DNA of 64,000 bases, taken from positions 124,001 through 188,000 of the IMG/VR virus record IMGVR_UViG_3300044712_001937. One strand, written 5' to 3'. Below are positions 13,439 to 24,111 of the stretch, one piece after another. The translations under genes and the position numbers were made by a program. Position 1 is the stretch's first letter. Every line of letters starts with the position of its first letter. The notes under the pieces are model-generated. The model searched no databases and had not been told where the DNA came from. It saw only the letters and a list, made by a program, of their open reading frames with translations.

Positions 13439-13526
13439 GTCGGGTTGCGTGAGTGGTCGAAACGGGGGTTCTGCAAAAGCTCTATTCCGAAAGGTACACA
13501 TTGGTTCAAATCCAATACCCGACTCA
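13439..13526 (+). tRNA. tRNA-Cys(GCA), long variable arm
   Basis: gtcgggt/acccgac acceptor, ct-gca-aa loop, U73. Confidence 0.85.
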
Positions 13527-13530
13527 ATAT

Positions 13531-13620
13531 TCTTGGGTTGCTTTAGTTGGTCGAAAAGTCCAGACTGTTAATCTGGTGAGATTTATCTCCATCATAGGTT
13601 CGAATCCTATCCCAAGAGCA
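13531..13620 (+). tRNA. tRNA-Asn(GTT), long variable arm
   Basis: tcttggg/cccaaga, ccaga-ctgttaa-tctgg, V-arm gagat-tt-atctc. Confidence 0.85.
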
Positions 13621-13687: not shown

Positions 13688-14272
13688 ATGAGTAATTTAA
13701 AAAATAATATCTTAAAATTAAGAGATGAAGGTAAAACATATAGTGAAATAAGTAAATTATTAAATTGTGCAAAAAGTACGATTTCTTATTATTGTAAATT
13801 ATATGGAAAATCAACTATTATTAGCAATAAAATAAATAATAGTGATATTTTATTATTTCAAGAGTTATATGATAATTATCATTCAGTTAATAAAGTTGCA
13901 TTTATTACAAATAGGTCTAAATCTACAATTTTAAAATATGTTAAAACTATAAAAAGAAATAAACAAACGTATGATGAAATAAAAAAAAATAACATTAAAT
14001 ATGTTAATAACTTTAGAAAAAGATTGAAAATAAAATCAGTTGATTATAAGGGCGGAAAATGTATTAAATGTGGTTATAATAAATGTATAGCAGCATTAGA
14101 ATTTCATCATAGAAATCCAAATAATAAAGATTTTGAAATTTCATCATCAAAAATTTTATCTTGGAATAAAATAAAAATTGAATTAGATAAATGTGATTTA
14201 GTTTGTAGTAATTGTCATAAAGAAATTCATTGGGATGTATCCCCTCTGCCTGATAAGCAGTTGGAAGGGTAA
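13688..14272 (+). CDS. HNH endonuclease with N-terminal HTH
   Basis: GGKCIKCGYNKC..ALEFHH...CSNCHKEIH. Confidence 0.85.
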   Translation: MSNLKNNILKLRDEGKTYSEISKLLNCAKSTISYYCKLYGKSTIISNKINNSDILLFQELYDNYHSVNKVAFITNRSKSTILKYVKTIKRNKQTYDEIKKNNIKYVNNFRKRLKIKSVDYKGGKCIKCGYNKCIAALEFHHRNPNNKDFEISSSKILSWNKIKIELDKCDLVCSNCHKEIHWDVSPLPDKQLEG

Positions 14273-14310
14273 TTTGGTTACATAAGGGTTCAATTCCCTT
14301 CTTCCCAACT
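14231..14310 (+). tRNA. Atypical tRNA-Ile(GAT)-like RNA lacking canonical D-arm
   Basis: tgggatg/cttccca acceptor; ctgc-ctgataa-gcag; T-arm aaggg-ttcaatt-ccctt; D-loop-like aatttggtta placed 3' of anticodon arm. Confidence 0.6.
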
Positions 14311-14317
14311 AAAATAT

Positions 14318-14402
14318 AGTGACGTGGATGAATGGTTTAGTCACCAGTCTGATACACTGGATTCTTAGGAATAATATGGGTTCGAATCCCATCGTCACTA
14401 CA
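14318..14402 (+). tRNA. tRNA-Ile(GAT), long variable arm
   Basis: agtgacg/cgtcact; ccagt-ctgatac-actgg; V-arm attc-ttag-gaat. Confidence 0.85.
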
Positions 14403-20030: not shown

Positions 20031-20228
20031 ATGGAAAATTCCAATTTAAGTAAGAACCCGACCAAATATTGGTTGGTTGAACTCACGCTTACGAGTGGTG
20101 AAGTTCTCGAATTTTATGTTAAAGCTAAAACACAATTTGATGCTTATGAAAAAGCTGAAGAATATATGTTTTGGCTCGATAACAAAAAATTAAAAAATAA
20201 ATTAAAAGAGTTTAGGCTTATGCCTTAA
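20031..20228 (+). CDS. Hypothetical protein
   Basis: ORF. Confidence 0.55.
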   Translation: MENSNLSKNPTKYWLVELTLTSGEVLEFYVKAKTQFDAYEKAEEYMFWLDNKKLKNKLKEFRLMP

Positions 20229-20269
20229 AAAATGAGTTTTGATGGTATCTCGCCATGAAAAACCATTAC

Positions 20270-20326
20270 ATACGGGATGTAGATATTGGTGAACTGAAAC
20301 ATCTAAGTAATCAACGAGTCCCGTAT
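20270..20326 (+). ncRNA. Hairpin presenting a 23S rRNA helix-11 sequence
   Basis: GAACTGAAACATCTAAGTA (20291-20309) inside atacgggat/gtcccgtat stem. Confidence 0.65.
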
Positions 20327-20330
20327 TAAT

Positions 20331-20404
20331 GTGGGTAACGCATAAATGGTGGTGCACCAGCTTGCCATGCTGGAATAGAGTCGGTTCAATTCCGATTACC
20401 CACT
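20331..20404 (+). tRNA. tRNA-Gly(GCC)
   Basis: ccagc-ttgccat-gctgg; U73. Confidence 0.85.
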
Positions 20405-20462
20405 CTACATTTCGAAAATATTTTTTAGCTTTTTATAGTATTTATATGAAAAATATAATACT

Positions 20463-21176
20463 ATGGAAAAATGGAATGAAAATTCGATAAATTTATTACT
20501 TAAATATTTTAATGAAAATAAATCATATGAAGAAATAGCATTATTATTAAATCGAACATATTCTTCAATAAAAAATAAATTAAATAAACTTGGGTATAAA
20601 TTTAGAGATGTTAATCCTGCAATAATTTCTTATAAATGTGAAAATTGTGGAAATGAATTTAATGATAAAACTTCTGTTGAACGAAGATTTTGTTCAAATT
20701 CATGCGCAGCAAAAATTAATAATAAATTAAGGCATAAAATAAGTGATAAAAAATGTTTAAATTGTAATAAAATATTACATTCACATCAAAATAAATATTG
20801 TTCAAATAATTGTTGTACTGAATATCATTGGAAACAAACAATAACTAAAATCGAAAATGGCGATACATCATTTAATGAAAGAATATATAAAAAATATTTA
20901 ATTCATAAACATGGAAACAAATGTATGAAATGTGGTTGGAATGAAATTAATCCTGTAACTAAATTAGTTCCAATACAACTTGAACATAAAGATGGAAATT
21001 CTGATAACCATAATTTAAATAATTTAGAATTATTATGTCCTAATTGTCATTCACTAACTCCAACATTTGGTGCATTAAATAAAGGAAATGGACGTGATGC
21101 ATTAAAAAAGAAAAAATTAATATTCAAAGAAATAAAGTGTGATAATACATGGCAAAGGTCTACCCCGTCACACTAA
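20463..21176 (+). CDS. HNH endonuclease with Zn-finger repeats
   Basis: CENCG..FCSNSC; CMKCG...LEHKDGN..N...LLCPNCH. Confidence 0.88.
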   Translation: MEKWNENSINLLLKYFNENKSYEEIALLLNRTYSSIKNKLNKLGYKFRDVNPAIISYKCENCGNEFNDKTSVERRFCSNSCAAKINNKLRHKISDKKCLNCNKILHSHQNKYCSNNCCTEYHWKQTITKIENGDTSFNERIYKKYLIHKHGNKCMKCGWNEINPVTKLVPIQLEHKDGNSDNHNLNNLELLCPNCHSLTPTFGALNKGNGRDALKKKKLIFKEIKCDNTWQRSTPSH

Positions 21177-21179
21177 AAT

Positions 21180-22068
21180 AAATAACACAGAGGATTCATC
21201 GCTGTAGCAATACAGAGGAAGTTCAACACATCTCCGCAAAAAGTGGGAGGCTCAACGTTAATCGGAGTCGTTAATACCACTGAGGATGCAAGCCATACAG
21301 ATTTAGACGGTGTGCGGGTCTATGATAATCGGGTTGGTGCTTAGATAAATGATGAATTTAAGTTCTTTGATTTTTTATTTCATTATTTATTTTTTATAGT
21401 ATTTATATTTATAATTGAATATTATGAAAAATAAAATTTATTATGTGTATCAATTAATTTCTTCAAATGATGAAATTTTTTACATTGGAAAAGGTTCTGG
21501 TAATAGAATGTATCAGCATGTTAGTATTGCTATGGGTAAATCAATTAGTAGAACAAAAAATCTTAAACTATATAATAAAATAAAGAAAATTATTGATAGT
21601 GGTGGATTTATTAAATGTGAAATTATTTTTAAAAGTGAAAATGAAAATGATTGTTTTAATGAAGAAATAAGACTTATAGAAAAAATAGGTCTTATTAATT
21701 TATGTAATTTAACTATTGGTGGTGAAGGTACTTCGGGATATAAATTATCTGAAGAAACTAAATTAAAAATGTCTTTAGCTAAAAAAGATAAAAAAAGAGA
21801 AAATATAAGTAAAATTCATAAAGAAAATTTATTAAAAAATCCTCAAATTTTTAAAATTGGTCATGATGGTTATTGGAATGGTAAAACATTATCTGAAGAA
21901 ACTAAATTAAAAATGTCTTTAGCTAAAAAAGGTCGTAAATTTTCAAAAGAACATAAAGAAAAAATATCGCAATCATTAAAAGGACGAGAACTTTCAGAAA
22001 CACATAAAAATAATATTAAAAAATCAAAGACTTATTAAAACAGAAAGTTGACTACGCTCATGTTATTT
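21180..22068 (+). ncRNA. rnpB: Minimal RNase P RNA interrupted by a homing-endonuclease insert
   Basis: P1 aaataaca/tgttattt; P2 attcatc/gatgaat; P3 ctgta-gcaa-tacag; GAGGAAGUUCAAC pairing with AACAGAAA-GUUGACU (P4 with bulged U); tagataaat before the P2 3' strand. Confidence 0.85.
21424..22038 (+). CDS. GIY-YIG homing endonuclease with NUMOD3 repeats, inside rnpB
   Basis: YYVYQL...FYIGKGSGNR...NLTIGGEG; LSEETKLKMS twice. Confidence 0.88.
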   Translation: MKNKIYYVYQLISSNDEIFYIGKGSGNRMYQHVSIAMGKSISRTKNLKLYNKIKKIIDSGGFIKCEIIFKSENENDCFNEEIRLIEKIGLINLCNLTIGGEGTSGYKLSEETKLKMSLAKKDKKRENISKIHKENLLKNPQIFKIGHDGYWNGKTLSEETKLKMSLAKKGRKFSKEHKEKISQSLKGRELSETHKNNIKKSKTY

Positions 22069-24035: not shown

Positions 24036-24111
24036 GGCTCTATAGCTCAATTGGTCAGAGTGACAGTCTCTAAAACTGGAGGTTATGGGTTCGAACCCCA
24101 TTAGAGCCACA
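24036..24111 (+). tRNA. Amber suppressor tRNA (anticodon CTA)
   Basis: ggctcta/tagagcc; cagt-ct-cta-aa-actg; canonical D and T arms; A73. Confidence 0.9.

Follow-up and report, generated by a model that had tools for sequence, protein, structure and literature searches.

A portable copy of 23S rRNA helix 11 capping stable RNA helices in several unrelated phages

A hairpin in the tRNA region of a large phage genome carries at its tip a full copy of helix 11 (H11) of 23S rRNA, comprising both the sarcin/ricin (S/R) motif and the apical loop, and comparison with other phages showed that this element is a selected, portable RNA module consisting of a short helix capped by the H11 copy. The same comparison showed that several unrelated phages carry the module as a graft at the end of a pre-existing stable helix, be it a hairpin in a tRNA-Gly spacer, an arm of tmRNA or a terminator-like stem. 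Its tip is nearly invariant, and the carrier stems drift with compensatory changes.

The window (the whole stretch of DNA that was analyzed, 64,000 nt, positions 124,001 to 188,000 of IMG/VR record IMGVR_UViG_3300044712_001937) belongs to a phage genome of 364.7 kb with direct terminal repeats and 26% G+C, which comes from rhizosphere metagenomes. The sequence runs that hold this phage are DNA of rhizosphere metagenome, and their contigs are identical, with no variants. About 21 tRNA genes lie on the + strand between 13.4 and 24.1 kb of the window, and among them we found a two-step hairpin on the same strand (20270-20326) that ends in the 19-nt tip GAACTGAAACATCTAAGTA (Table 1). The layout proposed by the sequence-only reading, which had placed this tip on an inner and an outer stem just ahead of tRNA-Gly, proved accurate throughout, with the tRNA gene 4 nt away. 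The H11 sarcin/ricin motif has its two strands in the GAA on the 5' side of the tip and the AGUA on its 3' side, with CUGAAACAUCUA between them, and the closing helix has a length within the 4-6 bp that, along with the 19-nt tip and these two strands, mark an H11 element. The H11-like fold was calculated at -14.2 kcal/mol against -14.9 for the minimum free energy structure, a gap of 0.7 kcal/mol in a nearest-neighbour energy model that gives no credit for the non-canonical pairs of the motif, and folding of a 71-nt stretch gave a z-score of -2.4. Rfam 15 returned no family match on 20262-20330, whether at the gathering score or at E-values up to 10, ARAGORN made no tRNA call on the hairpin, and a sigma-70/terminator scan and a Bacteroidota-type promoter pattern gave matches only at chance level. 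The hairpin does not have the form of a Rho-independent terminator: there is no T-run, the tRNA begins 4 nt on, and the terminator scan was empty at this site.

Table 1. Features of the hairpin and its surroundings in the window.
Feature	Position	Strand	Remarks
65-aa conserved gene (ORF65), function unassigned	20031..20228	+	stop codon 41 nt upstream of the hairpin
Outer stem, 5' arm, atacgggat	20270..20278	+	pairs with 20318-20326; 9 bp, one G-U
Internal loop, 5' side, gtagata	20279..20285	+	unpaired in the H11-like fold; other sequence in L693
Inner (closing) stem, 5' arm, ttggt	20286..20290	+	pairs with 20310-20314; 5 bp, one G-U
19-nt tip, GAACTGAAACATCTAAGTA	20291..20309	+	identical to 23S rRNA helix 11
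Inner (closing) stem, 3' arm, atcaa	20310..20314	+	pairs with 20286-20290
Internal loop, 3' side, cga	20315..20317	+	asymmetric relative to the gtagata side
Outer stem, 3' arm, gtcccgtat	20318..20326	+	pairs with 20270-20278
Spacer, taat	20327-20330	+	between the hairpin and tRNA-Gly(GCC)
tRNA-Gly(GCC)	20331..20405	+	ARAGORN, Rfam; 4 nt downstream of the hairpin
HNH homing-endonuclease-like gene	20463..21176	+	phrog_1271, E 7.6e-24
Second homing-endonuclease-like gene	21415..22038	+	phrog_314, E 1.1e-20

The tip had been called a copy of 23S rRNA helix 11 from its letters alone, and exact matches in true LSU rRNA genes bear this out. The 19-mer occurs exactly in genuine 23S genes of many phyla (including the loci L009 and L010) and corresponds to about nt 186-204 in annotated Salmonella 23S records. 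Scans of genome and metagenome contigs with an HGAAC...GTA pattern listed matches that were nearly all real rRNA (238/240), and the 19-mer is exact in these true 23S genes, 238 of the 240 loci among the matches listed. It has been previously reported that the H11 residues C192, U193 and A202 bind a K+ ion (PMC6555806), that H11 is one of five conserved sarcin/ricin motifs of LSU rRNA (PMC8450098), and that H11 and H37 come into contact during early 50S assembly, when domains I and II dock (PMC9935924). Shuffling the window led to an expectation of 0.05 matches when up to three mismatches were allowed, compared to the one exact match observed, and the 19-mer is single-copy in the 364.7-kb phage genome. 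A true LSU rRNA gene was considered and rejected, because Rfam gave no LSU match at E-values up to 10, the flanks are phage-specific, and the window hairpin lacks the conserved sequences that surround H11 in rRNA (upstream GCGAAC..; downstream ..GAGGAA.. and AGUAGCGGCGAGCGAA); the downstream rRNA motif is present in 238/240 of the listed rRNA matches. Taken together, the 19-mer in the window is neither a chance match nor part of an rRNA gene.

When 2.9 million IMG/VR contigs were scanned for exact matches, nine loci emerged, of which two were real rRNA and seven (L002-L008) were non-rRNA. In all seven of the latter (7/7), the 19-mer caps a hairpin, and the closing stem varies by locus yet pairs. 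We further scanned IMG/VR with the first 14-mer, the last 14-mer and the inner 16-mer, and with freed bases at positions 4 and 15, 13-14, 10-12 and 6-9; the additional matches were coding or stemless chance occurrences, with the exception of L551, a stemmed copy with one tip change (C10 to U) that precedes a T-run. The nearest relative of the window phage, L693, carries a copy with a different tip change (A9 to G), so that across nine copies there are only two changes, both single. Together, the window, L693 and the IMG/VR copies represent about seven phage lineages. The element is rare, with only a few copies among 2.9 million viral contigs, although these scans were pattern-based and divergent family members may be missed. 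The chance expectation is about 0.3 matches per 19-mer in IMG/VR; as a control, the 15 other base combinations at tip positions 4 and 15 were searched and yielded five distinct matches, none of them stemmed, in agreement with that expectation.

The closing stems of the copies pair in 85-87% of cells compared to 48-57% in shuffles, with 0/500 shuffles as high (in alignment A3, which holds nine copies, 87% of cells are paired versus 57% when shuffled), and controls in which the partner strand was slid gave 33-57%. Four to five of the six closing-stem pairs show changes on both sides. The same core with covarying flanks in further phages, proposed earlier as a check, was indeed found (L002-L008, L551 and L693). 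All phage copies are intergenic or within a stable RNA and lie in sense relative to the surrounding genes, and between lineages there is no sequence similarity outside the hairpin, except in the pairs L002/L004 and L006/L008. These properties bear on a reading at the level of DNA, in which a homing endonuclease or recombinase able to recognize rDNA would also use the 19-mer as its target or landing site. Homing-endonuclease genes do lie directly 3' of the hairpin in the window and in L005, where the gene concerned is again of phrog_314 (L005:9132-9869; Pfam GIY-YIG/SegE matches sub-threshold). We nevertheless find this explanation scarcely credible, since covarying inverted repeats and a strict sense orientation indicate RNA, most copies have no adjacent endonuclease, and endonuclease genes abound in tRNA regions in any case. 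The HNH gene of the window is probably context outside the element, and the homing-endonuclease genes 3' of the hairpin in the two lineages are probably the usual load of tRNA regions.

Several further candidates were examined. L368/L441 and the L369 group lie in, or antisense to, open reading frames and were rejected on that ground, and exact 19-mers in isolated phages of INPHARED proved to be rRNA contamination or host DNA. In one of the isolates, Paenibacillus phage Pd_22F (L512; MZ092003.1, about 84.3-85.1 kb), an unannotated end holds a genuine 5' part of 23S rRNA, which is either host DNA or an assembly artefact. No non-rRNA copies were found in 401 Bacteroidota genomes with a filter for non-C at position -6, and the Cbastvirus isolates related to L002/L004 have no hairpin at the syntenic site. 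We also observed an intergenic G+C-rich hairpin (L517:2647-2680) with an 18-nt loop, GAAAACAUCUUGUAAGUA, which has GA.., AAACAUCU and AAGUA blocks in common with H11 (covariance model E 0.08) and is either a diverged relative or a coincidence.

The RNAs that carry the module differ between lineages. In L006/L008 the carrier is a phage tmRNA, recognized by Rfam (74 bits, cut-off 47) and by ARAGORN, in which the module occupies the position of pseudoknot 4. The L008 tmRNA (L008:5073-5484) with its H11 module is found within a tRNA cluster, as are those of L006 and L516, and the tag peptide that ARAGORN assigns to it (AREKKKITGTSPY*) looks doubtful. In four lineages (L003, L005, L007 and L551) the module caps longer terminator-like stems 3' of genes, which are followed by a T-run in L003, L005 and L551 and by an A-rich tail in L007; with their T-run, the stems of the former three resemble a terminator with an oversized loop. 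Termination cannot be the common function, because the window hairpin has no T-run and is followed by a tRNA 4 nt on, and because of the A-rich tail in L007. In L002, the module is located 13 nt past a stop codon and 190 nt ahead of two tRNAs. Release by tRNA processing, which the sequence-only reading had suggested for the window, could apply there and in the nearest relative only, and does not extend to the tmRNA and terminator-like stems that serve as carriers elsewhere. From these carriers it follows that the feature shared by the copies is display on a stable RNA helix, rather than tRNA processing.

In most copies the hairpin falls within about 15-60 nt of the end or start of a gene, and rRNA mimicry by mRNA operators is an established use of such copies. 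The module might therefore be a cis-regulatory operator, through which an H11-binding protein controls the translation or stability of the flanking mRNA, as in ribosomal-protein (r-protein) leaders. This is very improbable in our assessment, given that the genes that flank the copies are unrelated to one another (ORF65, an SPFH protein, a 72-aa ORF, an HTH protein and homing endonucleases), that none of the copies has a ribosomal-protein gene next to it or the 5' UTR placement of r-protein leaders, and that the copy of one lineage is inside tmRNA.

To place the window hairpin among its relatives, syntenic regions were fetched via homologues of the 65-aa gene (20 homologues, 58-92% identity), and the order ORF65, hairpin, tRNA-Gly was found to be kept. 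Seven relatives have a plain G+C-rich hairpin of tetraloop type, with a loop of 4-7 nt, between ORF65 and tRNA-Gly. Covarying hairpins with a GNRA-like loop were observed in this gap at L694:2618-2662, L695:2705-2737 and L697:2708-2740 and in L699, L702 and L703, and this conserved plain hairpin may by itself be a processing signal or one that stabilizes 3' ends. Relatives without the H11 tip thus retain the outer stem as a simple hairpin, and in L693, whose protein is 92% identical to that of the window 65-aa gene, the H11 module sits atop the syntenic hairpin as it does in the window. The plain hairpin at the same site argues that the module was grafted onto the tip of a pre-existing helix.

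Between the window and L693, the tip is identical at 18/19 positions and the remaining element at 23/39 (59%; Fisher p = 0.002), with 90% identity in the flanking gene and 82% in the tRNA. In the outer stem five of the nine pairs, and in the inner stem two, are exchanged in compensatory fashion, and the outer stem of L693 is fully paired. L002 and L004 share 19/19 positions of the tip with flanks that are 55-73% identical, and L006 and L008 share 35/35 positions of tip plus stem within a tmRNA that is 82-86% identical, with 82-84% identity in the flanks. These three comparisons indicate that the tip is under far stronger constraint than its carrier.

The main rival to the action in trans proposed below bears directly on these relatives. 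It holds that the H11 fold, with its S-turn and K+-binding loop, is a structural cap, that is, a compact, highly stable and nuclease-resistant tip that would stabilize 3' ends, processing intermediates or the tmRNA arm and would involve no titration of a host factor. Consistent with this, the module is always at the tip of a helix that relatives have without it, it is found at gene 3' ends or before T-runs in four lineages, and both the K+ site and the S/R motif of H11 add stability (PMC6555806, PMC8450098). However, the tetraloop hairpins of the relatives do the same job, and stability does not need a full match to 19 bases of rRNA, of which just two single changes have been tolerated in nine copies; a 19-nt loop, moreover, weakens a terminator. 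That tetraloops suffice in relatives and that all 19 bases are kept weakens the case for a cap, and we consider it doubtful.

With regard to origin, natural H11 stems covary among bacteria too, with the same closing pairs (U-A, U-G, A-C, G-C). The stem and tip of L005 are identical over 27 nt to the rRNA form that occurs most often, and the inner stem of L693 resembles another natural H11 stem form. On these two likenesses, the simplest origin is that the module was probably captured from host rRNA, as a piece of about 30 nt. The same evidence for capture, together with the rarity of the element, would suit a neutral relic, in which a piece of host 23S entered hairpin loops via illegitimate recombination and has no function. 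We give this little credence: the element occurs independently in about seven lineages, with the same segment, in sense orientation and exactly at a helix tip every time, and conservation is confined to the tip, with divergence in the stems and flanks. In addition, H11 is the sole piece of rRNA copied, as no other rRNA-like segments were found in the hairpin-carrying phages.

We tentatively favor, at slightly less than even confidence, the reading that the module works in trans by mimicking H11 and competing with it. Transcribed with its carrier, it would be present as many stable, displayed copies, which would occupy whatever recognizes H11 on nascent or mature 23S rRNA. Candidate ligands would be a host or defence protein (a ribotoxin, an immune sensor, an assembly factor or a neighbouring ribosomal protein) or, alternatively, an RNA, namely H37, the docking partner of H11 in 50S assembly; with either class of ligand, the translation machinery would be protected or redirected during infection. 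In the window, the upstream RNA would come to carry the hairpin at its 3' end once RNase P had cut at the 5' end of tRNA-Gly. The tRNA and tmRNA neighbourhood fits a role in retaining translation during infection. In the literature searched, we found no ribosomal protein named as touching H11; bL28, to which old cross-link data point, is a candidate for an H11-neighbouring ribosomal protein.

Some considerations count against the mimic reading. Titration of a factor that sees tens of thousands of ribosomes would need very high expression or a much higher affinity, and the element is rare. Few factors may read H11, because its tip is partly engaged with H37 in the mature ribosome. No gene is shared by all carriers, as seen in an all-against-all comparison of eight carrier records; phrog_12005 was tried as a partner gene and rejected, since it is present in three lineages but has homologues elsewhere with no H11 hairpin within 10 kb. 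A more specific form of the proposal, which we regard as unlikely, is that the module is a weapon against the ribosome or against defence: either a decoy or inhibitor for a hitherto undescribed bacterial defence system or toxin that reads or cuts H11 of 23S rRNA, or a blocker of H11-H37 docking that stops the assembly of new host 50S subunits. If this were true, portable copies of an rRNA helix would be deployed in tRNA precursors, tmRNA and mRNA 3' ends, and helix 11 would be a previously unrecognized target or checkpoint.

The surroundings of the hairpin and of its counterparts hold other features. A tRNA with anticodon CUA (window 24036-24110), an amber suppressor, is labelled 'Pyl' by ARAGORN; across the whole genome there is no sign of TAG or TGA recoding, as open-frame coverage is barely altered by read-through. 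Unusually long tRNAs are located at 13439-13619 and 14231-14401 of the window (Cys 87 nt, Asn 89 nt, Ile 84 nt), and a tRNA-like match at 14231-14308 was returned by Rfam only, at threshold; the long or odd tRNAs may carry introns or extra arms. A homologue of bL12 (PF00542) lies about 0.8 kb past tRNA-Gly in relatives (L697:3524-3901, L698:1324-1701), and in the window genome only a sub-threshold bL12 match was seen, of 21 bits and with one internal TGA, outside the window (G000:C1:217317-217415). In L703, the next gene after tRNA-Gly encodes an ART-PolyVal (ADP-ribosyltransferase-like) protein (L703:1884-2726). A large SPFH/Band-7 protein is encoded directly upstream of the L005 hairpin (L005:7445-8998), and its homologue in the window genome (G000:C1:234720-237157, outside the window) adjoins a small protein of phrog_12005.

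Sequence kinship gives some indication of the host. The L002/L004 lineage is related to phages of Cellulophaga and Tenacibaculum (TerL 61-64% identical), and the helicase of the window phage has its best scores against phages of Chryseobacterium and Bacteroides. From these two kinships, a Bacteroidota host for the window phage is plausible.

Neither Rfam 15 nor the literature searched holds a description of a phage H11 mimic, and full-text searches with the sequence and for rRNA mimics or decoys returned only primer lists and cellular r-protein leaders. Relative to Rfam and the papers searched, then, a portable and exact copy of an rRNA hairpin on tRNA spacers, tmRNA and mRNA ends is new. If the module is a decoy, it would provide a ready bait of 35-57 nt for readers of H11 (a ribotoxin, an immune sensor, an assembly factor or an RNA receptor), and rRNA would join tRNAs and tmRNA as host molecules that phages copy to retain translation. 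If it is a stability cap only, it would be a natural example of modular RNA grafting.

Compared to H11 of 23S rRNA itself, which corresponds to about nt 183-213 in E. coli and ranks among the most conserved hairpins of the bacterial molecule, the phage module has an identical 19-nt tip and a closing helix of 4-6 bp with the same closing pairs (PMC8450098). It differs in being carried, without the rRNA flanks, on a tRNA spacer hairpin, a tmRNA arm or terminator-like stems. Stable RNAs other than tRNAs are familiar from phage tRNA clusters, as in the species 1 and 2 RNAs of T4 and the bacterial and phage Y RNAs, e.g. YrlA. Like these, the window element would be a small structured RNA beside phage tRNAs, probably co-transcribed and co-processed with them; compared through Rfam, it has no similarity to them, and T4 species 1 and 2 and Y RNAs are not known to carry an rRNA copy. 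Phage tRNAs and tmRNAs serve as cargo that protects translation, for example by replacing host tRNAs cut by defence nucleases, and the module shares their neighbourhood and, plausibly, their logic of sustained translation. Such cargo, however, consists of working copies, whereas a 57-nt hairpin cannot replace ribosomal H11 and could only compete for its ligands.

The nearest known precedent is rRNA mimicry by r-protein operators. The autoregulatory leaders of r-proteins (L1, L10, L20, S8, S15 and others) mimic rRNA binding sites, and to our knowledge none of them mimics H11. The concept of rRNA mimicry has been set out for such leaders (PMC7247131). As in the leaders, a non-ribosomal RNA here reproduces a substructure of rRNA, presumably for an rRNA-binder. 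The leaders, however, are cellular 5' UTRs of r-protein genes that act in cis through loose mimicry, whereas the phage module is an exact 19-nt copy that is phage-borne, independent of its carrier and unlinked to r-protein genes.
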